From positions 104,036,001 to 104,100,000 of the forward strand of contig NC_086099.1 in the NCBI RefSeq assembly GCF_963921235.1: a stretch of 64,000 nucleotides of DNA, given 5' to 3'. The notes under the pieces were generated by a model that was not told the DNA's origin, made no database searches, and saw nothing but the letters and a program-made list of their open reading frames with translations. Position 1 is the stretch's first letter. Each line of letters opens with the position of its first letter. This DNA is from Mobula hypostoma (Eukaryota). Below, in pieces: positions 3,932-59,047 of this stretch. Made by a program: the position numbers and the translations under genes.

Positions 3932-6727
3932 ATGGACAGAACAGCCACTGTGACCATCGTCATCCTCCTTCTGTGTGCCATTGCTGCACAGGGTATGTTG
4001 AGATATCTGAACTGGAGTTTTATTCAAGTGATGTATATATTTTGTGGTTCTTGTATTGTTTACAATGTAGAAAGCAATTAAAGTGAGGAATATTTAAATA
4101 TCTGTAACTGTAAATTGCATCAGCATCAGATTTATATAAGATTAATTCATGCAGCTTTCCTGCAACATTTGATAGTGAGATGTGCAAGCTCCTGTCTGGT
4201 GATGCTTTGATGAAGCAAAAACACTGAGGGAGTATCAGCAAGTTTTACAGGTTTTGTTCTCCTTGAAGCAACAATGAAATCTGAGTGAAGATAATCTTTC
4301 CTCAGGTGTTCCGATCCCAGGAGCACAAGGACGGTGCCATTGCATTCGAACCAGCTTTGATATTATTCATCCGACGTCCATCAGGAGCTTGAAATACATT
4401 CCCAGTGGATCCCACTGTGACAGAGCAGAGCTAATGTGAGTAAAGCAGCCAGATTATCAACTTTAACTTCATTCCTTTACTGATGTTTATTTCATAAACT
4501 GTGCACCTCAAGAGAAGACATACTGTTTCTGTGAATTAAATTTTGAATGATACTGTCTTTTCGCAGTGTCACCCTGAAAAATGAGAAGAAAGTGTGTGTG
4601 GATCCTGATGCCAGGTGGTTGCAGGCTCTCATAACAGCCATGAAAGGTCAGTGTTTGGTGCTTGTCAAAATTTTACTCTTAAGCTGCTAAGTAACGTAGA
4701 TGTAAAGAATTGTTTTTGCTGTGTGACTCTGGCCCTTCATAGTGGAGGGAGCTGTCTGCTCCTCACTGTCGTTCCTGCCGTAACCTGGAATGACAGCAAA
4801 CTCATTCGCCATGTTTGCTGTCAGAGCTGAGCCTCTCACATTATTAATGTTCCTTGGAACTGTGGTAGGGACCAGGAAGTAGAGATTGGGTCACCATAAA
4901 GCTATTAATTGCAGAACTGATGTCTAATACTGTTTATCACACCTTTTAATAAACGGGACGTTTTCAGAATGACAGGCGGTGACTAGTGGGGTACCGCAAG
5001 GCTCAGTGCTGGGACCCCAGTTGTTTACAATATATATTAATGACTTGGATGAGGGAATTAAATGCAGCATCTCCAAGTTTGCGGATGACACGAAGCTGGG
5101 TGGCAGTGTTAGCTGTGAGGAGGATGCTAAGAGGATGCAGGGTGACTTGGATAGGTTGGGTGAGTGGGCAAATTCATGGCAGATGCAATTTAATGTGGAT
5201 AAATGTGAAGTTATCCACTTTGGTGGCAAAAATAGGAAAACAGATTATTATCTGAATGGTGGCCGATTAGGAAAAGGAGAGGTGCAACGAGACCTGGCTG
5301 TCATTATACACCAGTAATTGAAAGTGGGCATGCAGGTACAGCAGGTGGTGAAAAAGGCGAATGGTATGCTGGCATTTATAGCGAGAGGATTCGAGTACAG
5401 GAGCAGGGAGGTACTACTGCAGTTGTACAAGTTCTTGGTGAGACCGCACCTGGAGTATTGTGTGCAGTTTTGGTCCCCTAATCTGAGGAAAGTCATCCTT
5501 GCCCTAGAGGGAGTACAAAGAAGGTTCACCAGATTGATTCCTGGGATGGCAGGACTTTCATATGAAGAAAGACTGGATGAACTGGGCTTGTACTCGTTGG
5601 AATTTAGAAGATTGAGGGGGGATCTGATTGAAACGTATAAAATCCTAAAGGGATTGGACAGGCTAGATGCAGGAAGATTATTCCCGATGTTGGGGAAGTC
5701 CAGAACGAGGGGCCACAGTTTGAGGATAAAGGGGAAGCCTTTTAGGACCGAGATTAGTAAAAACTTCTTCACACAGGAGTGGTGAATCTGTGGAATTCTC
5801 TGCCACAGGAAACAGTTGAGGCCAGTTCATTGGCTATATTTAAGAGGGAGTTAGCTATGGCCCTTGTGGCTATGGGGGTCAGGGGGTATGGAGGGAAGGC
5901 TGGGGCGGGGTTCTGAGTTGGATGATCAGCCATGATCATAATAAATGGCGATGCAGGCTCGAAGGGCTGAATGGCCTACTCCTGCACCTATCTTCTATGT
6001 TTCTATGTTTAATTCCAGCTGAGATTAATGAATGAAGAATGATCTTTAGTCTAACCAGTGATGTTTGGAATAAAATATTAAATAATGATTTTCACCATTG
6101 GTTGCAGCCATAGAATAGGGGCAGTTGGGTGAATAAATTATTGGGGTGCCAATTGCAGAGAATGCTTTGTCCTGGATGGTCTCCAGCATCTTGGTGTTGG
6201 AGCTACAGGCAGTGTTTACTCTCTAGAACAGGGGTTCCCTGCATGGGGGGTCTATGGATCCCTTGATTAATGATGGTGTTCACTCTCTAGAACAGGGGTT
6301 CACAACACGGAGTCCACTGTATAAAATGGCAGGAAGGCCTGCTCTAGAATTTTTCCTTGTAAAGAGATGATAGGATGATAAATTGGTGCCAGGAAGTGAT
6401 TCAACTCAGATTAATACAGTGGATAATGAACTGTTGATGCCAGGGAAGTCAGCAATGGTACCTCACATGCCTACATGGTGTAACTTTGTGAGAAGTTAGA
6501 AATGAACTTGAACACAGTACAATGCAGTTTGGTTTATACTGTTTGCAATATCAATGAGGTATGAGCAAGTTTCCAAGGCATCTTTTTGTGGAAAGTCAGT
6601 TTGAAAATTCTTTTAATGCTGTTGCTTGAGACACTATATGCTGAAAATCTGTGGGTAATGATACAAATTATTCAATTATTTTACAGGTGGAAACAACACT
6701 AATCAAAAAACTGAAGCTGCAAACTGA
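3932..6727 (+). CDS. CXC chemokine copy 1 (non-ELR, CXCL9/10/11- or fish CXCL8-like), 4 coding exons: 3932-3992, 4306-4435, 4567-4646, 6687-6727; 103 aa
   Basis: Manual splicing at GT-AG sites with chemokine-typical intron phases 1/2/1 gives MDRTATVTIVILLLCAIAAQGVPIPGAQGRCHCIRTSFDIIHPTSIRSLKYIPSGSHCDRAELIVTLKNEKKVCVDPDARWLQALITAMKGGNNTNQKTEAAN*. It has a hydrophobic signal peptide, C-X-C (C31/C33), C58, C74 and a VCVDP..W motif. Exon 4 is the least certain exon. Confidence 0.92.
4951..6007 (+). mobile_element. 5'-truncated young CR1 LINE in intron 3 of copy 1 only
   Basis: RT motifs GVPQGSVLGP and KFADDTK; (TTCTATGT)2 tail; TSD TTTAAT at 4945-4950 and 6008-6013; empty site in copies 2-5 (e.g. 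31001-31030). Confidence 0.93.
6229..6341. mobile_element. hAT (Charlie-like) MITE remnant in intron 3 with a duplicated left end
   Basis: CAGGGGTTC termini at 6229 and 6293, each preceded by CTCTAGAA; CTCTAGAA also follows at 6342-6349 (8-bp NTCTAGAN-type TSD). Homologues lie in intron 3 of all copies. Confidence 0.6.
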
Positions 6728-8329
6728 GCGAATGAATTCCATCTCCAGATTATCCGATGGGGAATGATGGAAGCTCAGCCCTGGGTGTTGACCCTGTGAT
6801 ATCACCATCCAGTGGTTCATTCCAGTGTCCTCTTCATTGTCTTCTGAGAGTGATCTTGGAGTTCCTTCCTGTCACAGGACATTTTTTGACCTGGACACAT
6901 GACCTGTTTGTATTTGAGGCCACCATCTGATGTTTGCGTTGAACTTTGCACAAATCTTAGGTTTCTTGTGCCATTTATGGTAATTAAAGTAGATTCTGGA
7001 CCTGTGACCTTGTGGAAAAGTGTAAATGAGACTGGAGTCTTTTGCTAAAACTTAATATTAGCTATCGGGTTGGGAGATGATGGTGGTATTAAACTAAGAT
7101 GGTGGATGAATCTCCATGACTACAGAGTTAAAATGATCTCAGGCCACAAGGGAAGCCAGTGATGAGGTGGTGGACTGTGCTCTTTGCCATCCCTGAAATT
7201 AAAGCAGGTGAACCCATGAGATTGTGTACAACGATCCCCACTCCTATCTTCCTCTTTCCTGTTTAAATTCTGTTCGGAAATGGTGATATACTGATGGAAG
7301 TACATTGGACCAAATGTGTTCTAATTTGAATGAAACATTCTTCTATAGAAATACCAGTGCAAATGTTTGAAAATCACTCTGTGCCTTTTTACTGCAATGT
7401 TTTTGACAGTTGATATTTTCATTAAAATATGGTGTTTTCTTTGCAAGTTGCCAGATTTTAGAACCTATCTAAAATTTGTTGAATTAATTCTCCGTTGATG
7501 CAATTTTTATGTAAAATATCTACATTTTAGAAGATAGTGCTGCTAATAGTCTGATAATCACTGGATGAAATAAAAGTTTTAAGTAAGAATAAACTTTATA
7601 TGTGGATGGAAATATTTTGTCTTGAGGGAACTTTTACTGACTGGATTCAGTTTATCATCCATCAAAGCTGGACTTTTGATATATGTGAATGAATTTGTTG
7701 AGCATTCCTCAAATGTATTTAGGAAGTTAAAATAAATTGTATTTCTAAAAAGAATTTGTTGTCAGTGGTTCTGAATCTTCAGTATATGGTCCTGTGTTTC
7801 TTCATTTAATAAATGAACTAATTAAAGAATGAAGAGCAGTGGGTCCTCAGCCAAATCTGCACAATGGCTGTGGGGAATTTCAGCGGGTTTTAAAAATTTC
7901 AGTTTAAATCTAACGTCTTGTATGAATAGAATTAAGATAATGGGTAATAATTTCAAGGGAAATTTATCATAAGCACAATGTACATTTGTAAAATGTTCAT
8001 AGTTCAATATATTTGAGCTCAAGTTTGCCTCATGACACTTTAAATATTTGCATACAACGCCTGAAATGCCGGTAAATTGAAATCGCTGAACTCATCTTGG
8101 TTAAAACACACTGAGATAGTTGTGACATTTAGTCAACTGCACAGATGAAGGGCACAGGTTAGTACAAAGTTACTGAATTGTGGAATCGTTGAGAAAGCCA
8201 GGAGATTCTTTGTCAGGACAATTTACATACCTATCATTGTAACTTAACACAGACGAGCTGGATCTGCAGTGCAATTAACATCAGACCAGAAACTGAAATT
8301 TTAGGCTTTGAGAATTATAAGGTAGCCAG

Positions 8330-10171
8330 GAGGAGATTAAGACTGGATTTTGGAGAGCTAGAAAAGGACGTGAGAAGGCCTTGGTGAGTAAGATTAAGGA
8401 AAACATCAGCACATTCTACATGTGCTGTATGTGAAAAACCAGAGGATGATGAGCTTGAGTTAGGAGTGTCAGAGATAAAAATGGAAACATTCTTTTATTG
8501 GAAGGATTAGGGGAGGTCCTCAATGAATACTTTGTTTCACCATTCACCAGTGAGAGGGAACTTCACAAATGTGAGGCTATCATTGAACAGGCTGCGACAA
8601 GAAAAAGGATGTGTAGAACTCTTGAGAAACATTAGGATAGGTAATTCCCTGTGACTGAACGAGGTTTACCCCTGGGTACTAAGAGAGCAAGGGAAGGGAT
8701 TTCTGCACCTTTAGTGATGATCTTTGCATCCTCACTAGTAACAAGAGTAGTACCAGAAGATTGGAGATGGACAAATATTATTTCTTTGTTCAAGTAAGGT
8801 AATTTGGATAAACCTCAGATTGATAGACCAGTGAATCTTATGCCATTGGTGGGAAAATGATTGGAGAGAAGTCTTTGAGACAAGATTTACATTTGGAGAA
8901 GCCTAGACTTGATCAGGGATAGTCAGTGTGAGTTTGCAAAGGACAGCTCATGTCTCACAAGCCTGGTTGAATTCTGGAAGGAAATGACCAAACAATTTGA
9001 TTAAGACAGAGCAGTGGATGTGGTGTATATGGCTTTTATAAGGTATTTGAGAAGGCTCCCAATAGCAAGCTCATTCGGAAAGTCAGGAGGCATGGGATGC
9101 AAGGAGAACTGCCCTCATGGATACAGAATTAGCTTGCCTACAGAAGGCAGAGGGTGGTAGTAGATGGAGCATATTCTGCCTGCAGGTTGGTATCCAGTGG
9201 TGTTTCACAATGATCTGTTATGAGAGCCTTGCTCTTTGTGATTTTTAGAAATGACTTGGATGAATAAGCAGATGGCTGGGTTGGTAAGTTTCTATATTTT
9301 GCAAGGGTTGGCAATGTTGTGGATAGTGTGGAAGGTTGTTGTAGGCTATAATGGGAAACTGAAGGATGCATAAGTGGGATATGGAGTTTAATCTGGAAAA
9401 GTGTGAAGTGATACACTTTGTAAGTTTGAACTTGAAGGCCAGGTACAGGGTTAATGGCAGAATTCTTAGCAGTGTGGAGGAACAAAGAGATTGTGGGGTC
9501 CTTGTATGTATATCTTTCAAAGATGATGTGCAGATTGATAAAGTGTTTGAGAACGCCATGATGTTTTGCCTTTCAGAAGTTGAATAACAGAGTTGAAGAG
9601 TTACAAGATAATTTTGCATTTCTGGACAACTCTGATTAGACCATACTTAAAATATTGTGCTCATTTCTGATTGCCTCATTGTAGTGAGGACGGGGAAGCT
9701 TCAGAGAGGTTGCAGAGGAGATGGGCTGGATCAGACATCATGTATTATGAGGAAAGGTTGAGCAAGCTTGGATTTTCCTCTTTGGAAGTAGGAGGGCGAG
9801 AGTTGACTTTACAGCTGTGTAAACAATGGTGAGAGACATTAACAGAGTGAACATTCAGTGTCCTTTTCCCAGGAGGTAAATGATGTATATGAGAGGACTA
9901 AATTTTAAGGTGATTAGAGTAAAGTATAGGTGCAGGTCAGAGCTACGTTTTTTGTACAGAGATAGATGGCTGCATGAAACGAGATGTCAGGGTGGTGTTG
10001 AAGGCAGATACATTAAAGGTATTAATGATAGGCACGTGGATGGAAGAAAAATGGAAGGCAATGTGTGAGGAAACATTGGAGTGATTCTGGAGGAAGTTAA
10101 AATGTCGACACAACATCATGAGCCAAATGGCTTGTATTGTGTTGTACTGTTATATGTTCTATGTTCTATGT
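8330..10171 (+). mobile_element. Old degenerate CR1 LINE, 3' part
   Basis: Broken ORF2 (KWDMEFNLEKCEVIHF) and (ATGTTCT)n tail at about 10153-10171; left boundary approximate. Confidence 0.85.
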
Positions 10172-10196
10172 CAGAAAACTGAAGTTGGCATCAAGA

Positions 10197-11697
10197 TGTC
10201 ACAATGGCGGGACATTGGGAGCAAGGGTGGACCCAAATGCAAGACACATCTTGTGAGGTTAATTAAATTTAGTTTATTGTTCGAAACCAGGAGAGCAAGG
10301 CAGGAGTAGGAATAGCGGACTGAGGACTATGACTGGACTGGGACCAAGGGTCTGGTTTAGGACTCGGAATCGGTTCCCAGAAATAGAGGAGACATGAAGA
10401 TGCTAGGGTATGGACTCTGAACCCGAGACTGGGCAAGGACCCAGTACCTGGGTCTTGCCTCGGGCTCGGACCCCAGAACCAGGCAAGGACATGACATGGG
10501 CTAAGGAGAGGAGGAACCTGGGAACACAGACCCTCGGTCTCGGGGAGCAGCTACATGGAACCATGGATACACACACAGAACACAGAGTCGGGACCCCTCC
10601 TTGGGTGCAGGACATAGGGCTGGGACCCACACACAGAACAGAGAGCCAGGACCCCTCCTTGGGTACAGGACATAGGACTGGGACTCATGACCCCCCGCGG
10701 GGCAACGGCAAGACGGTCTGACCTACCCCATGGAGGTGAGAACAAGACACGACAAGACATGACTCCCCGTGGGGCAACAACAAGACAGCCAGACTTACCC
10801 CCACTGAAGCGAGGACCAGACAAGACAAGACATGAGCCCCTGCGGAGCAATGGCAAGACGGCCTGACTTACCCCATGGAGGCGGGGACAAGACAAGACAA
10901 GACCAGCACGAATGAACACCAGACAGCACCTATCTAGCTCCGGTGATGGAACTAGACCAAAGTGCAGGCAGGGGCTGCAGACGAGGGCTAGAGGTGAGAG
11001 GGGCAGAGAAGGGATTCAGACAAGGGGGTAGGACAGGAATCACAGATCGCCAGGGCCAGGACTTGACTCAGAACTAGGAAGCCACCAGAGTCAGGACTTG
11101 ACTTAGTGCTTGAATGCCGCCAGGGCCAGGACTTGACTTGGTGCTTGAATGTGGCCAGGGCCAGGACTTGACTTAGTGCTTGAATGCCGCCAGGAACAGG
11201 ACTTGACTTGGTGCTTGAATGCCGCCAGGGACAGGACTTGACTTGGTGCTTGAATGCTGCCGGACCCAGGACTTGACTTGGAGCCTTCGGGTAGTGGCGA
11301 GCTCGCGACTCAGCCCAGGAACAGTAGACAGCAGTTCTTGGTTCCCTCCGGCGGGTTAACTGATGGACCCACCTCGGTGAGGAAACTTTTCAAGCTCGCT
11401 TTGGCAAGGTAACTGGACAGAGTTGTTCCAGTGAGGAGAGGCGAATTACCGGCACTCACTTCGGCAGAGACTAGGCTTGCTCCGGCCAGATGACATCGGC
11501 ACACCGTACCTTGGTTGACTTTGCAGACGCTCCCACACCGAACGGCTGAAAGCCAGAGACTATAAACTACTGGTTCAGCCGAGTGTTAATTGCCTCTAAT
11601 CACCAAAGTCAAGGGATATGGGAAAACAGGGAATCAACGGTCCGGATCGTAACATAAACAAGCTAAATTTAAAGGGACCCCGATCCGGACCATGACA
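10197..11697 (-). mobile_element. Solo LTR A (1501 bp)
   Basis: TGTCA...TGACA termini; 5-bp TSD CAAGA at 10192-10196 and 11698-11702; empty site near 26835-26850. Strand inferred from a minus-strand AATAAA at about 10273-10278. Confidence 0.85.
11051..11281. repeat. 35-bp minisatellite, about 6.5 units, inside solo LTR A
   Basis: Unit CAGGGCCAGGACTTGACTTGGTGCTTGAATGCCGC starts at 11051, 11086, 11121, 11156, 11191, 11226 and 11261. Confidence 0.9.
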
Positions 11698-11838
11698 CAA
11701 GAATAGCTGAAGTGTCAGCATGGACCATTAAATGTCACATTTCTTATTGCTAATTCACAGGTTATCACTAATTGTTATACCCAACTGTCCCTTAAACTCA
11801 TTAACAGGAGGGTGAATAACAGGAAAAGGAATTAAATC

Positions 11839-11870
11839 CGTGCGTGTGTGTGCATGTGTGTGTGTGTGCA

Positions 11871-11906
<36 letters not shown>
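11839..11906. repeat. Interrupted (TG)n microsatellite
   Basis: Directly visible. Confidence 0.95.
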
Positions 11907-11907
<1 letters not shown>

Positions 11908-12738
11908 CCACGTGTGGAAACATACATACTTGATCATATTGAGTTTGAACGTCTTCCCTCGTACGGGTGAGCATTAATTCCAGTGTGGAAGAACTCACTT
12001 TGTAGTTGTCCCCCTTCGCACTATATCAAGAACTTGCTGTGTGAAGCCCATGTGCTAGCTGATGTTCAATTGCTCATTCACTTGAATTAGACTGTGTACA
12101 CCAATAGACCGGATTGTAAGAGTCTGCAGAGGTCGTTGTTTCAGCCTGGCCCATCACGGGCATCTGCCAACCCACCATCGAGAACAATCCTTTGACTGCT
12201 TGATTTGGTATTGTTCAGGAAAGAGCTATTATCTTGGAGCCTTCTCATTTGCGGGTACTGGCTTTTATTTCTCTTATGGTTAGGAGGGTGATCTTGCTTA
12301 AGTGGAAGGAGATTGCCCGCCCCCCCCCACACATACTCAATGGTTATGAGATGTTATGTCATGTTTAAATTTAGAGAAGATTCGTTGTTTGATTTCTGAT
12401 TCTAATCAAGATTTTCAAAAGCTATGGGGACCCTTTCTGAACTATATTGAAAATCTTTGAATTGTTATTGTTATTAAGATATAGAAGTATAAAATAATAT
12501 ATGGTAAAGTACTCTTTCTTTTCCTTTTGTTTTTTTACCACCCAGCTTTGTCTTGGTAGTGGGTGTAGATTTTTTTATAATATAATTAACTATATTATTG
12601 TATTTCATAATTCAATTTATTTTATTTGATTGATCATGAATATGGGATACCGTGATTGTATTAGTGTGATTGTATATAGTGCATTTTCTGCTACCTTATT
12701 TTGATTTATGATAAGTACCCTTATGAATTCTTTATTTG

Positions 12739-14438: not shown

Positions 14439-15687
14439 ATTTGTGTATATGAAATTTAAATTTAATAAAAATATTGGAAAAAGAAAGAAAGATTTAAGGT
14501 GAAATTATTAAAACCTGCGAAAATTCGCACTGGCATTGTGCAGATTTGGCCGAGGACCCATTGCTCTTCATTCTTTAATTAGTTAATTTATTAAATGAAG
14601 AAATACAGGACTGTATACTGAAGATTCAGAAGCACTGACAACAGATTCTTCATCAGAAATACAATTTATTTTAATTTCTTAATACATTTGACGAATGCTT
14701 AACAAATTCATTCACATATATCAAAAGTCCAGCTTTGATGGATAATAAACTGAATCCAGTCAGTAAAAGTTCCCTCGAGAAAAAATATTTCCATCCACCT
14801 ATAAAGTTTATTCTTACTTAAAACTTTTATTTCATCCAGTGATTATCAGACTATTAGCAGCACTATCTTCTAAAATGTAGATATTTTACATAAGAGTTAC
14901 ATCAGTTCAGAATTACTTCAACAGATTTTAGATAGATTCTAAAATCTGGCACCTTACAAAGAAAACACTGTATTGTCATGAAAGTATCAACTGTCAAAAA
15001 CATTGCAGTAAAAAGGCACATAGTGATTTTCAAACATTTGTACTGGTATTTCTACATAAGATTGTTTCATTCAAATTAGAACATATTTGGTCCAATGTAT
15101 ATCCATCAGTATATCATCAAATCCGAACAGAATTTAAACAGGAAAGGGCAAGATAGGAGTGGGATTGCTGTGAACAATCCCATGGATCCTCCTGCTTTAA
15201 TTTCAGGTATGGGAGAGAGCACAGTCCACAACCCCATCACTGGCTTCCCTTGTGGCCTGAGATCACTTTAACTCTGTAGTCATGGAGATTCCTTCACTAT
15301 CTTAGTTTATTACCACCAACATCTTCCAATCCGATAGATAATATTAAATTTTAGCAAATGACTCCGGTCTCATTTACATTTTTCCACAAGGTCACAGGTT
15401 CAGAATCTACTTTAATTACCAGAAATTGCACAAGAACCCTATGATGTGCACAAAATGTAACACAAACATCAGATGGTGTCCTCAAATGCAAACAGGTCGT
15501 GTGTCCAGGTAAAAAAAATGTCCTGTGACAGGGAGGAACAGCAAGATCACTCTCCGAAGACAATGAAGAGGAGACACTGGAATGAACCACTGGATGGTGA
15601 TATCACAGAGTTAACACCCAGGGCTGAACTTCCATCATTCCCCATCGGATAATCCAGAGATGGAATTCATTCGCTCATTTTGCAGCT

Positions 15688-17399: not shown

Positions 17400-17487
17400 C
17401 TTCCACTTTGTACAGCAGACGGATCTTCTGTTCAATGCAGCTGCTCTCTGCTGAATCAAGACATGCTGAAACCATTCAGTGAGCTTC

Positions 17488-17603
17488 TATTTATTGGGAC
17501 ACTCTTCTCCAATTTGCATAATCTCATGCAGGGAACTCTGCCAAACACTGACGTCCTGAAGCAGGGGATTTCCTGCTCCCAGCTCAGATCTACTTTCACT
17601 TCT
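17488..17603 (-). promoter_or_regulatory. Proximal promoter of copy 2
   Basis: Same motifs at the same spacing: ATTTGCAT 17512-17519, GGGGATTTCC 17564-17573, ACTTTCACTTCT 17592-17603. Confidence 0.7.
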
Positions 17604-19657
17604 GTAGCTTTACATTTCAGCATGTGTGTGCTTCAGAGCTGTAATAGGATTATCTATCAATATAGCTGTTGATTCTGTTGGACTAATTTGAAGATTGATT
17701 TGTTTATTTTCAGGAAGAAATGAATAATTCACTTTTAGCAAAGTTAATGGTGCAAATGAACCAATTGTTTGCTTTCTAGCTTTCAAATTCCAGTTCTGGG
17801 CCTTATTCTCACAGGTTTGGAAAGTCTGCAGTTCAGGAGAGCATGCTCACTAAAAGATGGAGTTTATACCTGCGATTTCCGGGAAATTGCTCTCCCATTC
17901 AAAATCTTCATGTTGCAGCATGTCTCTCAGCTCTTTAATGTTGCAGGTTTGGAAAATACATAGATATTTCCAACATTGGATACAATCCACACTTTGTCTG
18001 AAGAATCAGCATGTTGCTGCATTGGTCCCAGACCTGGAATCATTCTTAAAACTTATCCATCCTCAGTGTTCACATTCTAAATCCCTGCACACCTCAGCAC
18101 TGAGATTGAAGTTTTCGGGGATCCCAAATCATACTCAGCTCACAGATAGGCTTATTGTGATGCTGAAGCTGCTGTTTTTCAGCTCCAGGAGTCTTGAGTA
18201 TGTGTTTACTTATACCTTCAGGTTATGCAGTCTTTGCTGTATAGAATAATGTCTAGTCCTCAAGCCATTCTATACCTGATGACAACTACATTACAATATT
18301 CTCAAAAGCAGACACAAAATACTGGAGGAACTCAGCAAGTCAGGCAGTTTTGTGCAGATGTGAACTTTTAGGATTTATAGAATAGAGCCTGGTCTCTGAA
18401 ACATGCTATATTCTTTGATAACTACCATTGAATAAGCTTACTCAATTAAAAGTTTAAAACTCAAGTATTATACACAATTATTCTCTGGAATTTATTTAAC
18501 ACTTCCCCAATGTCTCAATCAGTCCCATACACGAGTGATAGGATATATTATGTATAGACAGTGGGTTTATATGCGAGCAAAAATATTTGTGTAGAGAATG
18601 GTGTGGGATAAGTTGGACAATATTGCAAGATCTGACCAGGTTATTACGTGCTGTAATAAGGCTTTTGCTGGAATATTTGCTGCAGCAACAACTGTTCATT
18701 GTGCTCGTCGTCCAAGAGTGACGAAACATCTGCTTCAGGGCTTTCTGGAGCTGGTTCAAGTTTTAGTTCCCAGATTTGTGAATTGTGGAGCCTGGAGCCG
18801 TGTTGACTCCTCCCCCTGGGGAAAGTACAAACATCAGTGAAATTCAGAACTGCAGCACAGATTGCAGCCAGTGTTTGTGAGACCACGTGATTTCCAGGAA
18901 ATCAGCTTGTTTTATGCTTCATGATGTTCTATACATTGAAGTCTACACTTGCTCCTGTTTGCTTATCATTTGAAATATATCACAACAAACAAAAAGACTA
19001 TTCCCAGATCAGCCATGTTACAAGCACGTTGGAGTAAACAGAAGCAATCTGTTTTAAGTGTGTATAATATTTTTTACCGTTCTCCATTAACAAAGATAAT
19101 GAGTTCCACGGGAGGTACAAGGCCAGGAGCCAACTTCTACTGCACTGGTAAAATGAATTGTTAATATATTAAATTCACCCATAACAGTAGTTCATGAAAA
19201 TCAACAAATTAATCAGCACGTCTAAAATTCAACACAGGGGCACGTGTTTTTTTTCAGAAAACCTGCACTTGACAACCACGAGATTCCTGTACAACACTAG
19301 CAATATATTCAATGTCAGAAACTGCATCCCTTTCTTTGGCTGTTGCATCCAATAATTTCCAAAGTTATGTTTTGATGCAGCTCTTTCAATACCACATAGC
19401 TACTTTGCCCAGTTTGCAGAGGTGGACCCAATGTAATCAGTCTCCAAGTAGATTTAAACTGAACTATGTGAGGAATACAAAAGTGAATTGATTTTCTCAG
19501 CATTGGTGGCCAAAGCAGATTAAATTCTGATCCTGACTTTGCTTAACCGCACATACTGTAAAAAAGAGACAGTACATATCCATCCTCAGTCCGTCAGATT
19601 TCACTGACACACTGACGTCCATTCCAGTGTCAGGTGTGATAGGATTTGCGATGTTAA

Positions 19658-26516: not shown

Positions 26517-26708
26517 NNNNNNNNNNNNNNNNNNNNNNNNNNNNNNNNNNNNNNNNNNNNNNNNNNNNNNNNNNNNNNNNNNNNNNNNNNNNNNNNNNNN
26601 NNNNNNNNNNNNNNNNNNNNNNNNNNNNNNNNNNNNNNNNNNNNNNNNNNNNNNNNNNNNNNNNNNNNNNNNNNNNNNNNNNNNNNNNNNNNNNNNNNNN
26701 NNNNNNNN
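26517..26708. other. N run (192 nt) at the homologue of the TG microsatellite
   Basis: Flanks are the reverse complement of those around about 11825-11931. Confidence 0.9.
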
Positions 26709-32029: not shown

Positions 32030-32117
32030 CTTCCACTTTGTACAGCAGACGGATCTTCTGTTCAATGCAGCTGTTCTCTGCTGAATCAAGACACGCTGAA
32101 ACCATTCAGTGAGCTTC

Positions 32118-32233
32118 TATTTATTGGGACACTCTTCTCCAATTTGCATAATCTCATGCAGGGAACTCTGCCAAACACTGACGTCCTGAAGCAGGGGATT
32201 TCCTGCTCCCAGCTCAGATCTACTTTCACTTCT
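32118..32233 (-). promoter_or_regulatory. Proximal promoter of copy 3
   Basis: GGGGATTTCC at 32194-32203; octamer, IRF and TATA-like motifs conserved. Confidence 0.7.
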
Positions 32234-34084
32234 GTAGCTTTACATTTCAGCATGTGTGTGCTTCAGAGCTGTAATAGGATTATCTATCAATATAGCTGTT
32301 GATTCTGTTGGACTAATTTGAAGATTGATTTGTTTATTTTCAGGAAGAAATGAATAATTCACTTTTAGCAAAGTTAATGGTGCAAATGAACCAATTGTTT
32401 GCTTTCGAGCTTTCAAATTCCAGTTCTGGGCCTTATTCGCACAGGTTTGGAAGGTCTGCAGTTCAGGACAGCATGCTCACTACAAGATGGAGTTTATACC
32501 TGCGATTTCCGGGAAATTGCTCTCCCATTCAAAATCTTCATGTTGCAGCATGTCTCCCAGCTCTTTAATGTTGCAGGTTTGGAAAATACATAGATATTTC
32601 CAACATTTGATACAATCCACACTTTGTCTGAAGAATTGAGGATGTGTTTACTTATACCTTCAGGATATGCAGTCTTTGCTGTATAGAATAATGTCTAGTC
32701 CTTAAGTCATTCTATACCTGATGACAACTACATTACAATATTCTCAAAAGCAGACACAAAATACTGGAGGAACTCAGCAAGTCAGGCAGTTTTGTGCAGA
32801 TGTGAATATAGAATAGAGCCTGATCTCTGAAACATGATATATCCTACCATTGAATAAGCTTACTCAATTAAACGTTTAAACCTCAAGAATTATACTCAAT
32901 TATTCTCTGGAATTTATTTAACACTTCTCCAATGTCACTACCAGTCCCACATACAAGTGATAGGATATATTATGTATAGATAGTGGGTTTATATGCGAGC
33001 AAAAATATTTGTGTAGAGAATGGTGTGGGATAAGTTGGACAATATTGCAAGATCTGACCAGGTTATTATGTGCTGTAATAAGGCTTTTGCTGGAATATTT
33101 GCTGCAGCAACAACTGTTCATTGTGCTCGTTGTCCGAGAGTGACGAAACATCAGCTTCAGGGCTTTCTGGAGCTGGTTCAAGTTTTAGTTCCCAGATTTG
33201 TGAATTGTGGAGCCTGGAGCCGTGTTGACTCCTTCCCCTGGGGAAAGTACAAACATCAGTGAAATTCAGAACTGCAGCACAGATTGCAGCCAGTGTTTGT
33301 GAGGCCACGTGATTTCCAGGAAATCAGCTTGTTTTATGCTTCATGATGTTCTATACATTGAAGTCTACACTTGCTCCTGTTTGCTTATCATTTGAAATAT
33401 ATCACAACAAACAAAAAGACTATTCTCAGATCAGCCATGTTACAAGCACGTTGGAGTAAACAGAAGCAATCTGTTTTAAGTGTGTATAATATTTTTTACC
33501 GTTCTCCATTAACAAAGATAATGAGTTCCACGGGAGGTACAAGGCCAGGAGCCAACTTCTACTGCACTGGTAAAATGAATTGTTAATATATTAAATTCAC
33601 CCATAACAGTAGTTCATGAAAATCAACAAATTAATCAGCACGTCTAAAATTCAACACAGGGGCACGTGTTTTTTTTTCCAGAAAACCTGCACTTGATAAC
33701 CACGAGATTCCTGTACAACACTAGCAATATATTCAATGTCAGAAACTGCTTCCCTTTCTTTGGCTGTTGCATCCAATAATTTCCAAAGTTATGTTTTGAT
33801 GCAGCTCTTTCAATACCACCTAGCTACTTTGCCCAGGTTGCAGAGGTGGACCCAGTGTAATCAGTCTCCAAGTAGATTTAAACTGAACTATGTGAGGAAT
33901 ATAAAAGTGAATTGATTTTCTCAGCATTGGTGGCCAAAGCAGATTAAATTCTGATCCTGACTTTGCTTAACCGCACATACTGTAAAAAAGAGACAGTACA
34001 TATCCATCCTCAGTCCGTCAGATTTCACTGACACACTGACAGGTCCCGGTCTGTGTCAGGTGTGATAGGATTTGCGATGTTAAG

Positions 34085-40875: not shown

Positions 40876-40893
40876 ATCGCGGACGAGCCCCCA
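40876..40893 (-). promoter_or_regulatory. Primer-binding site complementary to tRNA-Pro
   Basis: TGGGGGCTCGTCCGCGAT has one mismatch to canonical PBS-Pro TGGGGGCTCGTCCGGGAT and lies 4 nt from the 5' LTR; the same site is at 25035-25052. Confidence 0.9.
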
Positions 40894-42357: not shown

Positions 42358-42493
42358 NNNNNNNNNNNNNNNNNNNNNNNNNNNNNNNNNNNNNNNNNNN
42401 NNNNNNNNNNNNNNNNNNNNNNNNNNNNNNNNNNNNNNNNNNNNNNNNNNNNNNNNNNNNNNNNNNNNNNNNNNNNNNNNNNNNNNNNNNNNN
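42358..42493. other. N run (136 nt) at the microsatellite homologue
   Basis: Same flanks as 26517-26708. Confidence 0.9.
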
Positions 42494-47513: not shown

Positions 47514-47601
47514 CTTCCACTTTGTACAGCAGACGGATCTTCTGTTCAATGCAGCTGTTCTCTGCTGAATCAAGACATGCTGAAACCATTCAGTGAGCTT
47601 C

Positions 47602-47717
47602 TATTTATTGGGACACTCTTCTCCAATTTGCATAATCTCATGCAGGGAACTCTGCCAAACACTGACGTCCTGAAGCAGGGGATTTCCTGCTCCCAGCTCA
47701 GATCTACTTTCACTTCT
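47602..47717 (-). promoter_or_regulatory. Proximal promoter of copy 4
   Basis: GGGGATTTCC at 47678-47687; other motifs conserved. Confidence 0.7.
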
Positions 47718-49754
47718 GTAGCTTTACATTTCAGCATGTGTGTGCTTCAGAGCTGTAATAGGATTATCTATCAATATAGCTGTTGATTCTGTTGGACTAA
47801 TTTGAAGATTGATTTGTTTATTTTCAGGAAGAAATGAATAATTCACTTTTAGCAAAGTTAATGGTGCAAATGAACCAATTGTTTGCTTTCTAGCTATCAA
47901 ATTCCATTTCTGGGCCTTATTCTCACAGGTTTTGAAAGTCTGCAGTTCAGGACAGCATGCTCACTACAAGATGGAGTTTATACCTGCGATTTCCAGGAAA
48001 TTGCTCTCCCATTCAAAATCTTCATGTTGCAGCATGTCTCCCAGCTCTTTAATGTTGCAGGTTTGGAAAATACATAGATATTTCCAACATTGGATACAAT
48101 CCACACTTTGTCTGAAGAATCAGCATGTTGCTGCATTGGTCCCAGACCTGGAATCATTCTTAAAACTTATCCATCCTCAGTGTTCACATTTTAAATCCCT
48201 GCACACCTCAGCACTGAGATTAAAGTTGTCGGGGATCCCAAATCATACTCAGCTCATAGATAGGCTTATTGCGATGCTGAAGCTGCTGTTTTTCAGCTCC
48301 AGGAGTCTTGAGTATGTGTTTACTTATACCTTCAGGATATGCAGTCTTTGCTGTATAGAATAATGTCTAGTCCTCAAGCCATTCTATACCTGATGACAAC
48401 TACATTACAATATTCTCAAAAGCACACACAAAATACTGGAGGAACTCAGCAAGTCAGGCAGTTTTGTGCAGATGTGAATATAGAATAGAGCCTGATCTCT
48501 AAAACATGATATATCCTACCATTGAATAAGCTTACTCAATTAAACATTTAAACCTCAAGTATTATACTCAATTATTCTCTGGAATTTATTTAACACTTCT
48601 CCAATGTCTCTACCAGTCCCACACACAAGTGATAGGATACATTATGTATAGATAGTGGGTTTATATGCGAGCAGAAATATTTGTGCAGAGAATGGTGTGG
48701 GATAAGTTGGACAATATTGCAAGATCTGACCAGGTTATTATGTGCTGTAATAAGGCTTTTGCTGGAATATTTGCTGCAGCAACAACTGTTCATTGTGCTC
48801 GTTGTCCGAGAGTGACGAAACATCAGCTTCAGGGCTTTCTGGAGCTGGTTCAAGTTTTAGTTCCCAGATTTGTGAATTGTGGAGCCTGGAGCCGTGTTGA
48901 CTCCTTCCCCTGGGGAAAGTACAAACATCAGTGAAATTCAGAACTGCAGCACAGATTGCAGCCAGTGTTTGTGAGACCACGTGATTTCCAGGAAATCAGC
49001 TTGTTTTATGCTTCATGATGTTCTATACATTGAAGTCTACACTTGCACCTGTTTGCTTAAATCATTTGAAATATATCACAACAAACAAAAAGACTATTCT
49101 CAGATCAGCCATGTTATAAGCATGTTGGAGTAAACAGAAGCAATCTGTCTTACGTGTGTATAATATTTTTTACCGTTCTCCATTAACAAAGATAATGAGT
49201 TCCACGGGAGGTACAAGGCCAGGAGCCAACTTCTACTGCACTGGTAAAATGAATTGTTAATATATTAAATTCACCCATATCAGTAGTTCATGAAAATCAA
49301 CAAATTAATCAGCACGTCTAAAATTCAACACAGGGGCACGTGTTTTTTTTCCAGAAAACCTGCACTTGACAACCACGAGATTCCTGTACAACACTAGCAA
49401 TATATTCAATGTCAGAAACTGCTTCCCTTTCTTTGGCTGTTGCATCCAATAATTTCCAAAGTTATGTTTTGATGCAGCTCTTTCAATACCACCTAGCTAC
49501 TTTGCCCAGGTTGCAGAGGTGGACCCAGTGTAATCAGTCTCCAAGTAGATTTAAACTGAACTATGTGAGGAATACAAAAGTGAATTGATTTTCTCAGCAT
49601 TGGTGGCCAAAGCAGATTAAATTCTGATCCTGACTTTGCTTAACCGCACATACTGTAAAAAAGAGACAGTACATATCCATCCTCAGTCCGTCAGATTTCA
49701 CTGACACACTGACGTCCATTCCAGTGTCAAGTGTGATAGGATTTGCGATGTTAG

Positions 49755-52207
49755 GGGCAAACTCCCATACTCCCATACTGTTAGGGGTCTAGATGATTTA
49801 GAGTTTGTAAAATGTGTTCCGGAAAGTTTTCTAAATCAATATATTGAGGGACCAACTAGAGGGGATGCAATATTGGATCTCCTGTCAGGAAACGAGTTAG
49901 GACAAGTGACGGAAGTCTGTGTAGGGGAGCATTTTGGTTCTAGTGATCATAACACCATAAGTTTCAATTTGATCATGGACAAGGATAGATCTGGTCCTAG
50001 GGTTGAAGTTCTGAACTGGAAGAAGGCCAAATTTGAAGAAATGAGAAAGGATCTAAAAAGCGTGGATTGGGACAGGTTGTTCTCTGGCAAAGATGTGATT
50101 GGTAGGTGGAAAGCCTTCAAAGGGGAAATTTTGAGAGTGCAGAGTTTGTATGTTCCTGTCAGGATTAAAGGCAAATTGAATAGAAATAAGGAACCTTGGT
50201 TCTCAAGGGATATTGCAACTTTGATAAAGAAGAAGAGGGAGTTGTATGAAATGTATCGGAAACAGGGAGTAAATCAGGTGCTTGAGGAGTATAAGAAGTG
50301 CAAGAAAATACTTAATTAAGAAAGTAATCAGGAGGGCTAAAAGAAGACATGAGGTTGCCTTGGCAGTCAAAGTGAAGGAAAATCCAAAGAGCTTTTGCAG
50401 GTATATTAAGAGCAAAAGGTTTGTAAGGGATAAAGTTGGTCCTCTTGAAGATCAGAGTGGTCGGTTATGTGCAGAACCAAAGGAAATGGGGGAGATTTTT
50501 TGCGTCTGTACTTACTAAGGAAACTGAATGAAGACTATGGAATTAAGGGAAACAAGTAGTGAGATCATGGAAACTGTACAGATTGAAAAGGAGGAGGTGC
50601 TTGCTGCCTTGAGGAAAATTAAAGTGGATAAATCCCCGGGACCTGTCAGAGTGTTCCCTCGGACCTTGAAGGAGACTAGTGTTGAAATTGTGGGGGCCCT
50701 GGGAGAAATATTTAAAATGTCGCTGTCTACGGGTGAGGTGCCAGAGGATTGGAGAGTGGCTCATGTTGTTCCGTTGTTTGAAAAAGGATCGAAAAGTAAT
50801 CCGGGAAGTTATAGGCCGGTGAGTTTAACGTCGGTAGTAGGTAGGTTATTGGAGGGAGTACTAAGAGACAGAATCTACAAGCATTTGGATAGACAGGGAC
50901 TTATTAGGGAGAGTCAACATGGCTTTGTGCGTGGTAGGTCATGTTTGACCAATGTATTGGAGGTTTTCGAGGAGGTTACCAGCAAAGTGGATGAAGGGAA
51001 GGCAGTGGATATTGTCTACATGGATTTCAGTAAGGCCTTTGACAAGGTCCCACATGGGAGGTTAGTTAGGAAAATTCAGTCGCTCGGTATACATGGAGAG
51101 GTGGTAAATTGGATTAGACGTTGGCTCAATGGAAGAAGCCAAAGAGTGGTGGTAGAGAATTGCTTCTCTGAGTGGAGGCCTGTGACTAGTGGTGTGCCAC
51201 AGGGATCAGTGCTGGGTCCATTGTTATTTGCCATCTATATCAATGATCTGGATGATAATATGGTAAATTGGATCAGCAAATTTGCTGATGATACAAAGAT
51301 TGGAGGTGTAGTAGACAGTGAGAATGGTTTTCAGAGCCTGCAGAGGGACTTGGACCAGCTGGAAAAATGGGCTGAAAAATGGCAGATGGAGTTTAATACA
51401 GACAAGTGTGAGATATTGCACGTTGGAAGTTCAAACCAAGGTAGAACATACAGGGTTAATGGTAAGGCACTGAGGAGTGCAGTAGAACAGAAGGATCTGG
51501 GAATACAGATACAAAATTCCCTAAAAGTGGCGTCACAAGTAGATAGGGTCGTAAAGAGAGCTTTTGGCACATTGGTCTTTATTAATCAAAGTATTGACTA
51601 TAAGAGCTGGAATGTTATGATGAGGTTGTATAAGGCATTGGTGAGGCTGAATCTGGAGTATTGTGTTCAGATTTGGTCACCAAATTACAGGAAGGATATA
51701 AATAAGGTTGAAAGAGTGCAGAGAAGCTTTACAAGGATGTTGCCAGGACTTGAGAAACTCAGTTACAGAGAAAGGTTGAATAGGTTAGGACTTTATTCCC
51801 TGGAGCGTAGAAGAATGAGGGGAGATTTGATAGAGGTATATAAAATTATGATGGGTATAGATAGAGCGAATGCAAGCAGGCTTTTTCCACTGAGGCAAGG
51901 GGAGAAAAAAACCAGGTAACATGGGTTAAGGGTGAGGGGGGAAAAGTTTAAAGGGAATATTAGTGGGGGCTTCTTCACACAGAGAGTGGTGGGAGCATGG
52001 AATGAGCTGCCAGATGAGGTGGTAAATGCGGGCTCTTTATTAACATTTAAGAATAAATTGGACAGATACATGGATGGGAGGTGTATGGAGGGATATGGTC
52101 CATGTGCAGGTCGGTGGGACTTGGTAGAAAATAGTTTGGCACAGCGAAGAAGGGCCAAAAGGCCTGTTTCTGGGCCGTAGTTTCTATGGTTTCTATGGTT
52201 TTCTATG
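49755..52207 (+). mobile_element. Young CR1 LINE (unit 4)
   Basis: ORF 50528-51919 RT; apparent TSD GTTAG at 49750-49754 and 52208-52212. Confidence 0.95.
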
Positions 52208-52857: not shown

Positions 52858-52987
52858 NNNNNNNNNNNNNNNNNNNNNNNNNNNNNNNNNNNNNNNNNNN
52901 NNNNNNNNNNNNNNNNNNNNNNNNNNNNNNNNNNNNNNNNNNNNNNNNNNNNNNNNNNNNNNNNNNNNNNNNNNNNNNNNNNNNNNN
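52858..52987. other. N run (130 nt) at the microsatellite homologue
   Basis: Same flanks as the other two N runs. Confidence 0.9.
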
Positions 52988-53670
52988 TCCTGTTATTCAC
53001 CCTCCTGTTAATGAGCCATTGAGTTTAAGGGACAGTTGGGATTAACAATTAGTGATAACCTGTGAATTAGCAAGAAGAAATGTAACATTTAATGGTCCAT
53101 CCTGACACTTGAGCTATTCTTGATGCCAACTTCAGTTTTCTCACATAGAACATAGAACATATAACAGTACACCACAATACAAGCCATTTTGCTCATGATG
53201 TTGTGTCGACATTTTAACTTCCTCCAAAATCACTCCAATGCTTTCCTCACACATTGTCTTCCATTTTTCTTCCATCCACGTGCCTATCATAAATGTCTTT
53301 AATATATCTGCCTTCAACACCACCCCGGCACCTCGTTTCATGCAGCCATCTATCTCTGTACAAAAAACGTAGCTCTGACCTGCACCTATACTTTACTCTA
53401 ATCACCTTAAAATTTAGTCCTCTCATATACATCATTTACTTCCTGGGAAAAGGACACTGAATGTTCACTCTGTTAATGTCTCTCACCATTGTTTACACTG
53501 CTGTAAAGTCAACTCTCGCCCTCCTACTTCCAAAGAGGAAAACCCAAGCTTGCTCAACCTTTCCTCATAATACATGATGTCTGATCCAGCCCATCTCCTC
53601 TGCAACCTCTCTGAAGCTTCCCCGTCCTCACTACAATGAGGCAATCAGAAATGAGCACAATATTTTAAGT

Positions 53671-54447
53671 CCTTCCAGGTGAGGCATCACTTCACCTGTG
53701 AGTCGACTGGGGTGATATACTGCGTCCGGTGCTCCCGATGTGGCCTTTTATATATTGGTGAGACCCGACGCAGACTGGGAGACCGCTTTGCTGAAAATCT
53801 ACGCTCTGTCCGCCAGAGAAAGCAGGATCTCCCAGTGGCTACACATTTTAATTCCATGTCCCATTCCCATTCTGACATGTCTATCCACGGCCTCCTCTAC
53901 TGTAAAGATGGATCCACACTCAGGTTGGAGGAACAACACCTTATATTCCGTCTGGGTAGCTTCCAACCTGATGGCATGAACATCGACTTCTCTAACTTCC
54001 ACTAAGGCCCCACCTCCCCATCGTATCCCATCTGTTACTCATTTTTATGCACACATTCTTTCTCTCACTCTCCTTTTTCTCCCTCTGTCCCTCTGAATAT
54101 ACCTCTTGCCCATCCTCTTGGTCACCCCCCGCTCCTTGTCTTTCTTCCCGGACCTCCTGTCCCATGATCCTCTCGTATCCCCTTTTGCCTATCACCTGTC
54201 CAGCTCTCGGCTCTATCCCTCCCCCTCCTGTCTTCTCCTATCATTTTGCATCTCCCCCTCCCCCTCCAGCTTTCAAATCCCTTACTCACTCTTCCTTCAG
54301 TTAGTCCTGACGAGGGGTCTCGGCCTGAAACGTCGACTGCACCTCTTCCTATAGATGCTGCTTGGCCTGCTGCGTTCACCAGCAACTTTGATGTATGTTG
54401 CTTGAATTTCCAGCATCTGCAGAATTCCTGTTGTTAGCTTTTATTTT
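53671..54447 (+). mobile_element. 5'-truncated Penelope-like element (same family as 249-1248)
   Basis: GIY-YIG ORF 53679-54005; 15-bp TSD CACAATATTTTAAGT at 53656-53670 and 54448-54462; empty site at about 27379-27393. Confidence 0.92.
54302..54339 (+). ncRNA. Minimal type I hammerhead ribozyme
   Basis: UAGUC-CUGACGA-GGGGUCUCGGCCU-GAAA-CGUC-GACUG; predicted cleavage after 54334. Confidence 0.85.
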
Positions 54448-57333: not shown

Positions 57334-59047
57334 TCAGTTTTTTGATTTGTGTTGTTTCCCACCTGTAAAATTATTGAATAATTTGTATCATTATCCACAG
57401 ATTTTCAGTATGTAGTATCTCAAGCAACAGCGTTAAATGAGTTTTCAAACTGACTTTCCACAAAAAGATGCCTTGGAAACTTGCTCGTACCTCATTGATA
57501 TTGCAAAAGGTATAAACCAAACTGCATCGTACTGTGTTCAAGTTCATTTCTAATTTCTCACAAAGTTACACCATGCAGGCATGTGATGTACCATTGCTGA
57601 CTTCCCTGGCATCAACAGTTCATTATCTACTGCATTGATCTGAGTTGAATCACTTTCTGACACCCATTTACCATCCTATCATCTCTTTACAAGGAAAAAA
57701 TCTAGAGCAGGACTTCCCACCTTTTATTGTGCTATGGACTTCGTGTTGTGAACCCCTGTTCTAGAGAGTGAACACCATCATTAAGCAAGGGATCCATAGA
57801 CCCCATTGCAGGGAACCCCTCTTCCAGAAAGTAAACACTGTCTGTAGCTCCAACACCAAGATGCTGGAGACCATCCAGGACAAAACATTCTGTGCAACTG
57901 GCACGCCAATAATTTATTCACCCAACTGCCCCTATTCTATGGCTGCAAACAATGGTAAAAATCATTATTTAATATTTTATTCTAAACATCACTGGATAGA
58001 CGATAAATCATTCGTCATTCATTAATCTCAGCTGGAATTAAAAGGTGTGATAAACAGTTTCAGACATCAGTTCTGCAATTAATAGCTTTATGGTGACCCA
58101 ATCTCTACTTCCTGGTCCCTACCACAGTTCCAAGGAACATTAATAATGTGAGAGGCTCAGCTCTGACAGCAAGCATGGCGATTGAGTTTGCTGTCATTCC
58201 AGGTTACGGTTGGAATGACAGTGAGGAGCAGACAGCTCCCTCCACTATGAAGGGCCAGAGTCACACAGCAAAAACAATTCTTTACATCTACGTTACTTAG
58301 CAGCTTAAGAGTAAAATTTTGACAAGCACCAAACACTGACCTTTCATGGCTGTTATGAGAGCCTGCAACCACCTGGCATCAGGATCCACACACACTTTCG
58401 TCTCATTTTTCAGGGTGACACTGCGAAAAGACAGTATCATTCAAAATTTAATTCACAGAAACAGTATGTCTTCTCTTGAAATAATGAAATAAACATCAGT
58501 AAAGGAATGAAGTTAAAGTTGATAATCTGGCTGCTTTACTCACATTATCTCTGCTCTCTCACAGTGGGATCCTTTGGGAATGTATTTCAAGCTCCTGATG
58601 GACTTCGGATGAATAATATCAAAGCTGATCCGAATGCAATGGCACCGTCCTTGTCCTCCTGGGATCGGAACACCTGAGGAAAGATTATATTCACTCAGAT
58701 TTCATTGTTGCTTCAAGGAGAACAAAACCTGTAAAACTTGCTGATACTCCACCAGTGTTTTTGCTTCATCAAAGCATCACCAGACAGGAGCTTGCACATC
58801 TCACTGTCAAATGTTGCAGGAAAGCTGCATGAATTAATCTTATATACATCTGATGTTGATGCAATTTACAGTTACAGATATTTAAATATTTCTCACTTTC
58901 ATTCCTTTCTACATTGTAAACAATACAAGAACCACAAAATAGGTACATCACTTGAATAAAACTCCAGTTCAGATATCTCAACGTACCCTGTGCAGCAATG
59001 GCACACAGAAGGAGGATGACGATGGTCACAGTGGCTGTTCTGTCCAT
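57334..59047 (-). CDS. CXC chemokine copy 5; exons 59047-58987, 58673-58544, 58420-58341, 57362-57334; 99 aa
   Basis: Mature region VPIPGGQGRCHCIRISFDIIHPKSIRSLKYIPKGSHCERAEIIVTLKNETKVCVDPDARWLQALITAMKGGKQHKSKN*; intron-1 donor is GTACGT. Confidence 0.93.

Follow-up and report, generated by a model that had tools for sequence, protein, structure and literature searches.

The 64,000-nucleotide stretch of Mobula hypostoma DNA analysed here (contig NC_086099.1, positions 104,036,001 to 104,100,000; hereafter the window) contains five intact four-exon genes for CXC chemokines, one in each copy of a repeat unit. Taken together, the structural, comparative and phylogenetic data indicate that the window is very probably a real part of a larger M. 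hypostoma chemokine array, in which units of about 11.5-16 kb carry members of an elasmobranch CXC family that has undergone a species-specific expansion.

The window is a segmental duplication. Self-BLAST resolves it into four direct units and one inverted arm at the left end, with successive copies spaced about 16.1, 14.7, 15.4 and 11.5 kb from start to start. The inverted arm (1878-4950 and 6008-10196) pairs with the reverse strand of the remaining units, and the units are 94-99% alike, differing in insertions and in 1.5-5% of bases. When all six frames are scanned for C-x-C, each unit yields one short open segment (..GVPIPGAQGRCHCI..), one on the plus strand and four on the minus strand. 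A 24-nt probe covering the beginning of the signal-peptide sequence likewise has exactly five sites: 3932 on the plus strand; and 17399, 32029, 47513 and 59047, all on the minus strand. The outermost of these, 3932 and 59047, are both ends of the interval singled out by an earlier reading of the letters alone (the sequence-only reading). The gene models built from these sites, with the one large insertion that separates g1 from the others, are:

3932-3992, 4306-4435, 4567-4646, 6687-6727, plus strand: exons of g1, the inverted copy, 103 residues, span 3932..6727
17399-17339, 17025-16896, 16772-16693, 15716-15688, minus strand: exons of g2, 99 residues, equal to XP_062898285
32029-31969, 31655-31526, 31394-31315, 30336-30308, minus strand: exons of g3, 99 residues, equal to XP_062898286
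47513-47453, 47139-47010, 46878-46799, 45884-45856, minus strand: exons of g4, 99 residues, equal to XP_062898287
59047-58987, 58673-58544, 58420-58341, 57362-57334, minus strand: exons of g5, 99 residues, equal to XP_062898288
4950..6008, no strand: roughly 1.06 kb inserted into intron 3 of g1, where the self-BLAST arms stop (4950) and restart (6008) and the alignment diverges; not in g2-g5

The boundaries of exons 1-3 were taken from alignment of the five loci and are the same in all five. The exons measure 61, 130, 80 and 29 nt, exon 4 being 41 nt in g1. Exon 1 ends in phase 1, exon 2 in phase 2 and exon 3 in phase 1, giving the pattern 1/2/1 in all five genes. Every intron has a GT donor and an AG acceptor, all 30 splice sites are intact, and none of the five coding frames contains an in-frame stop. 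Exon 1 is identical throughout (0/61 variable sites). The five spliceable four-exon genes with shared phases and identical first exons that the sequence-only reading had described are borne out by the models. The same exon layout is found in a family member from the sawfish Pristis pectinata. A second Pristis family gene lies on the minus strand of CM019856.1 (30840-29477), head to head with the annotated one and about 7 kb beyond it; its exons 1-3 are recognisable, 49-67% identical to the sequence P0078, and it is not among the genes called there.

The last exon is short and distant. In g2-g5 it lies about 0.9-1.0 kb downstream, behind a TTTTACAG acceptor, and encodes GGKQHKSKN. The nearest good acceptor, CCCTTCATAG, would give the tail VEGAVCSSLSF.. 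and was rejected as the start of exon 4: homolog alignments end at residue 90, and homolog tails read GGKQHKSKN. In g1, exon 4 lies about 2.0 kb downstream, beyond the insertion in intron 3, and has lost one G. Because of this 1-bp deletion, the g1 tail is GGNNTNQKTEAAN instead of GGKQHKSKN and the product has 103 rather than 99 residues. The chemokine domain of g1 is intact despite the changed tail.

The encoded proteins are recognisable as chemokines by domain and by predicted fold. The spliced product matches Pfam IL8 (PF00048) with 58.3 bits (E 9e-16; cut-off 21.3). Exon 2 alone (25.2 bits) and exon 3 alone (23.1 bits) both score above the cut-off and cover consecutive parts of the profile, positions 2-34 and 36-58, respectively. 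All five products have cysteines at 31, 33, 58 and 74 in the mature part, in keeping with the earlier claim of four conserved cysteines in frames free of stops; across 63 family members, C31, C33 and C74 are invariant and C58 is nearly so. Residues 4-19 form a hydrophobic helix that ends in AAQG, and the predicted product is a 21-residue signal peptide followed by a basic mature chemokine of about 78 residues, with an isoelectric point of 9.1-9.8. An AlphaFold model built with 63 family sequences has a core predicted local distance difference test score of 85-94 over residues 31-90. It places strands at 46-52, 62-67 and 72-75 and a helix at 80-96, and its target-normalised template modelling score is 0.80-0.91 against NAP-2, IL-8, KC, CXCL13 and IP-10. 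The model shows the standard chemokine fold, in which two disulfides hold three strands and a C-terminal helix together. All copies read QGR-CHC at the first two cysteines, with neither ELR nor xLR before them, and the G-R pair is nearly invariant in the family. The motif (QGR-CHC-I), the Pfam match and the fold agree with the earlier description of these genes as CXC chemokines without ELR. The products of g2-g5 have a single N-glycosylation sequon, N69 (NET), in the 40s turn; in g1 this sequon is lost (NEK) and a new one, N93 (NNT), lies in the frameshifted tail.

The gene models read from the raw DNA match the public ones exactly. The products of g2-g5 are 100% identical over 99 residues each to M. 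hypostoma RefSeq XP_062898285-XP_062898288, with the order kept. In GCA_963921235.1, the gene of XP_062898285 spans 1712 nt, as does g2, and the gene of XP_062898288 spans 1714 nt, as does g5; the next 99-residue gene, which starts 9821 nt past the latter on the same strand, is g4. A 103-residue IL8-domain gene annotated tail to tail with that of XP_062898285, 8961 nt away, is g1. As all five genes are annotated in this assembly, they are not hidden, which is how the sequence-only reading had described them: they are already public as "interleukin-8-like" and escape only a prokaryote-style list of open reading frames. That reading's guess of a cartilaginous fish host was right, the 100% protein identity and base-exact gene geometry identifying M. 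hypostoma. The RefSeq name is automatic and carries no orthology information. A literature search found no paper on this family or array.

The 232-Mb chromosome that holds the window has at least four further members of the family (XP_062898281, XP_062898282, XP_062898289 and XP_062898290), and the window, which lies wholly inside the array, is therefore only part of it. The chromosome also carries a family member that RefSeq names "C-X-C motif chemokine 9-like" (P0083, 86 residues); a portion of exon 2 is gone from it, along with the invariant Trp and the second cysteine of CXC, and it has no Pfam match. From its sequence this is probably a decaying copy with a misleading name.

Three N runs lie within the window, and they bear on how far the copy number can be trusted:

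26517..26708 (192 nt), no strand: N run 1, between g2 and g3, nearest exon 3600 nt off
42358..42493 (136 nt), no strand: N run 2, between g3 and g4, nearest exon 3363 nt off
52858..52987 (130 nt), no strand: N run 3, between g4 and g5, nearest exon 4347 nt off

With every run 3.3 kb or more away from the closest exon, none of the reading frames is affected by them. In each of the three, the first N follows the identical homologous base (..CAATATGAT), and the ends agree to within 4 bases in unit coordinates. One masked or unread repeated element would fit this pattern better than scaffold joins would. Across run 3, g5 ends 9821 nt from where g4 starts, as it does in the public record.

A skeptical interpretation is that the assembly has inflated the copy number, with alternative haplotypes or mis-joined repeats set in tandem across gaps. 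The N runs that stand between g3, g4, g5 and their neighbours, and the 94-99% likeness of the units, are what such an error would leave. Against it, the unit lengths differ (about 14.6, 15.5 and 11.5 kb), as do the insertions and 1.5-5% of bases; g1, on the plus strand, and g2, which like g3-g5 is on the minus strand, share one unbroken stretch free of N runs; the N runs begin at the same homologous base in three units; and the separately assembled M. birostris genome has at least nine family genes on one chromosome. An artefact of this kind is, on this evidence, very unlikely.

The genealogy of the family is consistent with a real and lineage-specific expansion. A first protein search returned only elasmobranch "interleukin-8-like" proteins, the M. 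hypostoma ones best. The family is a clade with 99/100 support that covers rays, skates and sharks, with several members per species. A family tree of 81 sequences groups the window copies with XP_062898282 and XP_062898289 in a clade (support 95/92) that excludes all ten M. birostris sequences, which upholds the lineage-specific amplification proposed earlier. Two peripheral genes have one-to-one partners between the Mobula species, for example XP_062898290 with M. birostris P0040. Among the sequences listed, V10 in the signal peptide occurs only in the M. hypostoma group to which the window copies belong. The species clade would arise either by duplication after the Mobula species split or by homogenisation within each species. 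The 5' half of g5 is like g2, down to identical exon 2 residues and a shared 8-bp deletion in intron 2; its intron 3 is like that of g3, from which it differs by 1.1% as against 5.3% from g2. This mosaic pattern fits an exchange between units and may reflect one.

Differences among the copies are unevenly distributed along the gene. Diversity, expressed as the mean pairwise difference among the five window copies, is as follows:

-2000 to -301, distal upstream: 0.034, 128/1911 columns variable
-300 to -1, promoter: 0.006, 4/300 columns variable
exon 1: 0, 0/61 variable
intron 1: 0.026, 18/313 variable
exon 2: 0.043, 11/130 variable, the highest of the gene parts
intron 2: 0.021, 5/131 variable
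exon 3: 0.015, 3/80 variable
intron 3, first 300 nt: 0.020, 13/300 variable

Promoter and exon 1 together have 4/361 variable columns, compared with 164/2655 in the introns and distal flank (Fisher p = 7e-6). This low variability points to constraint or to preferential homogenisation. The variation in exon 2 is almost wholly nonsynonymous, and exon 2 does not differ significantly from the introns in diversity (p = 0.09). By our own tally, the 14 variable coding nucleotides comprise 12 nonsynonymous and 2 synonymous steps, a ratio that rules out strong purifying selection (binomial p = 5e-5 against a nonsynonymous to synonymous rate ratio, dN/dS, of about 0.15). The variable residues (27, 35, 36, 44, 54, 59, 63, 65, 71 and 76) fall, on the AlphaFold model, in the N-terminus, the N-loop, the 30s loop, strand 2 and the 40s turn. 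Positive selection was considered and rejected as a finding, as 12:2 is not significantly above the neutral expectation (p = 0.31).

These values also bear on whether the copies are functional. Most could be young, unexpressed duplicates drifting to pseudogenes, with one or two still functional, and this account would explain why dN is about equal to intron divergence (0.01-0.04 versus 0.014-0.034), as well as the frameshifted tail and 1-kb intron insertion of g1 and the presence in the same genome of P0083, a degenerate member without the CXC cysteines. It sits poorly with five frames, 30 splice sites and all cysteines being intact, and with a promoter and signal-peptide exon significantly more conserved than the neighbouring non-coding DNA. 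We consider it improbable.

The conserved promoters themselves contain candidate control elements, located as follows:

3632..3931, plus strand: promoter and 5' untranslated region of g1; IRF-like GAAGTGAAAGT at 3729-3739, kappaB-fitting GGAAATCCCC at 3758-3767
17400..17699, minus strand: promoter of g2; IRF-like site at 17592-17602, kappaB-like site at 17564-17573
32030..32329, minus strand: promoter of g3; IRF-like site at 32222-32232, kappaB-like site at 32194-32203
47514..47813, minus strand: promoter of g4; IRF-like site at 47706-47716, kappaB-like site at 47678-47687
59048..59347, minus strand: promoter of g5; IRF-like site at 59240-59250, kappaB-like site at 59212-59221

Four elements within 300 nt before the ATG are kept in 5/5 copies: GAAGTGAAAGT; GGAAATCCCC; TTATGCAAAT; and a TATA-like AATAAATAG. 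By the consensus sequences of such elements, we take these to be an IRF/PRDI-like (positive regulatory domain I) site, an NF-kB site, a C/EBP or octamer site and a TATA box, respectively. On the reverse strand GGAAATCCCC reads GGGGATTTCC, which fits the kappaB consensus GGGRNNYYCC. Neither GAAGTGAAAGT nor GGAAATCCCC occurs in the window outside the five promoters. The pairing of an IRF-like with a kappaB-like site is typical of CXCL10. To judge by these motifs, an inducible chemokine is plausible.

Placing the family among the known chemokine classes is less straightforward, since intron phases, profile scores and trees point in different directions. According to Ohta and Flajnik 2024 (PNAS, PMC10801876), most bony-vertebrate CXCL genes have phases 1-2-2, and 1-2-1 is found only in some chondrichthyan, coelacanth and lungfish genes of "cluster B"; the chondrichthyan cxcl genes with 1-2-1 are all in cluster B, the SDAD1-linked CXCL9-11 side. 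The sequence-only reading had treated 1/2/1 as the general CXCL8/9/10/11 layout, which the 1-2-2 of most bony-vertebrate genes contradicts. When the family profile is compared with solved structures, CXCL13 (66.0 bits) and IL-8 (65.9 bits) lead, followed by CXCL10 (58.6 with the signal peptide, 48-49 for the mature protein), CXCL9 (51) and CXCL11 (46.5 and 32.7). By single sequence, NAP-2/CXCL7 (57 bits) and IL-8 (54) score highest among solved structures, and the structural search likewise has both at its head. In the careful tree the family falls outside a 66-row CXCL8 group and beside a 29-row CXCL13-type group, with support of 91/72, below the starred level, and a family stem of 0.71; the quick tree is a polytomy. 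A CXCL9-11 clade is not recovered in the careful tree. In approximately unbiased (AU) tests, p is 0.84 for the family joined to tetrapod CXCL9-11 and 0.40 for the family as sister to the CXCL8 group; as the CXCL9-11-constrained tree beat only a short free search, the value of 0.84 is not positive evidence.

One possibility is that these genes are the ray counterparts of CXCL9/10/11: occupants of the cluster B locus, interferon-induced, and ligands of a CXCR3-type receptor. Consistent with this proposal are the 1-2-1 phases, as in chondrichthyan cluster B (PMC10801876); the conserved PRDI/IRF-like site beside the kappaB-like site in each promoter; the joined tree, which is not rejected; and a CXCR3-like receptor reported from little skate (PMC9252580). 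However, CXCL13 and IL-8 outscore CXCL10, CXCL9 and CXCL11 in the family profile, and the family and CXCL9-11 are not united in the careful tree. The assignment is possible, if on balance doubtful. For the sequence-only suggestion of a CXCR3-type ligand, this means that the intron phases and the IRF-like site speak in its favour, that the profile scores rank CXCL13 and IL-8 higher, and that the AU tests reject neither side.

The RefSeq name implies a different assignment, to CXCL8-type neutrophil chemoattractants acting on CXCR1/2. Here the support comes from NAP-2/CXCL7 and IL-8 standing first by single sequence and structure; from two of the three CXCL8-like marks of PMC10801876 being present or nearly so (a Glu in strand 2 and a Trp after Cys4); from the Arg kept before CXC; and from the sister position, which is not rejected. 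Specifically, E62 (strand 2, AEIIVTL) and W81 (after Cys4) are invariant, the position after the latter holding L (rays) or V (sharks), the published marks having been matched by eye. In opposition, the motif is QGR, neither ELR nor xLR; the phases are 1-2-1 rather than 1-2-2; and a separate shark DLR-type CXCL8 (P0111) occupies the CXCL8 group together with gar, sturgeon, eel and tuatara sequences, while the window family lies outside it. Published dogfish and chimaera IL-8 have the motif SLR/SLQ (PMC2585555) and therefore belong to another lineage than the window family. On these sequence comparisons, the family is separate from the xLR-type CXCL8 of sharks, and its being CXCL8-type is rather unlikely. 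Synteny was equally sought for the class assignment in public assemblies: no non-chemokine neighbour was found within 10 kb of the family genes looked up there, and the 10-kb flanks of four M. hypostoma family genes hold further chemokine genes or nothing.

Returning to the array itself, a number of points weigh against the interpretation given at the outset. The window alone does not prove how many units lie across the three N runs or in which order, and the public annotation, being based on the same assembly as the window, gives no independent evidence on copy number. The g1 gene, with its altered, less basic tail and large intron insertion, may be on its way to decay. A dN/dS above 1 is not significant, and relaxed constraint on some copies is as possible as diversification. 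For transcription, induction and splicing, the basis is the public gene models together with motifs.

With these points in mind, a mechanism for the array can be proposed. A repeat unit has been copied several times, four copies head to tail and one inverted, each unit containing one four-exon CXC chemokine gene and the debris of LINE (long interspersed nuclear element) and gag-like retroelements. NF-kB and IRF signalling would switch the genes on through a promoter near-identical in all copies, and the proteins would attract leukocytes through a CXC receptor, which may be of the CXCR3, CXCR1/2 or CXCR5 type. Copies would be kept functional while the N-loop and 30s loop, which would face the receptor and glycosaminoglycans, drift or are driven apart, and unequal crossing-over and gene conversion would shuffle the units.

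Beside its gene, each unit holds the retroelement debris just mentioned. LINE-type reverse transcriptase open reading frames (Pfam RVT_1) occupy the same place in each unit, on the plus strand, at 20452-21902, 34938-36509, 50528-51919 and 61776-63461. Their open stretches are 208+285, 523, 463 and 561 residues, and this difference between units indicates an element older than the duplications that has decayed separately in each copy. An intact 658-residue gag-like open reading frame with a SCAN domain, which resembles retroviral capsid, and a zinc knuckle is present in two copies on the minus strand, 22599-24575 and 38440-40416. The 4.3-kb segments around them (22226-26516 and 38067-42357) are 99.3% identical, compared with 94-98% for the rest of the units, and the segment is missing from the last unit except for its final 587 bp. 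The sequence-only statement that every transposable element in the units is broken was checked for these two kinds and holds for them, the reverse transcriptase frames (208-561 residues) and the 658-residue gag-like frame both being partial elements.

Some further features of the window lie apart from the genes. The inverted g1 arm is separated from the first direct unit by about 4.3 kb (10196-14492) that are richer in G+C and have no match of at least 400 nt to the repeat units; by position, this is the centre of the tail-to-tail arrangement. It includes a (CA)n-type run near 11816-11974. At the left edge, a 194-residue open reading frame on the plus strand (235-819) has a weak match to the GIY-YIG nuclease domain (21.6 bits, just under the cut-off) and may be a fragment of a Penelope-like element. 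The stretch 482-1249 recurs at 53668-54435.

Tandem, lineage-specific chemokine expansions are common in vertebrates, and as the genes are already in RefSeq, the array adds little that is new in itself. Behind the "interleukin-8-like" label there is probably a distinct elasmobranch lineage of CXC chemokines with 1-2-1 phases. For comparative immunology, the interest lies in the species-specific clustering of the copies and in the contrast between a conserved promoter and variable receptor-facing loops. A more ambitious synthesis would make this the elasmobranch CXCL9-11 (cluster B) lineage, inducible by interferon and NF-kB, with core copies born, homogenised and then pushed apart at the receptor-binding N-loop and 30s loop, independently in every Mobula species. 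We hold this combined account to be speculative and, as a whole, unlikely. Elasmobranchs are known for slow molecular evolution; were the account true, the array would be a fast birth-and-death, arms-race locus in such a group.

Several known systems can be set beside the family. Chondrichthyan cluster B cxcl genes (PMC10801876) resemble the window genes in having four exons, CXC in exon 2 and phases 1-2-1; membership of the window genes in that cluster is taken from the phases alone, and the window family also bears the Glu and Trp by which that paper marks CXCL8-like genes of cluster A. With CXCL8, NAP-2 and GRO, the ligands of CXCR1/2, the family shares the fold, the EIIV strand, the Trp after Cys4 and the Arg before CXC, but it lacks ELR or xLR, falls outside the CXCL8 clade and has its third intron in phase 1 rather than 2. 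CXCL9, CXCL10 and CXCL11 are likewise non-ELR, with an IRF-like plus kappaB-like promoter and a short basic tail from a tiny exon 4, yet their sequence similarity to the family is lower and the tree does not support the union. CXCL13 and the fish CXCL13-like proteins share the top profile score with IL-8 (66 bits) and are the nearest group in the careful tree, although at a support below the starred level and across a long family stem. Finally, relative to the RefSeq M. hypostoma "interleukin-8-like" series XP_062898281-XP_062898290, the window genes g2-g5 are identical in sequence, order, span and spacing.

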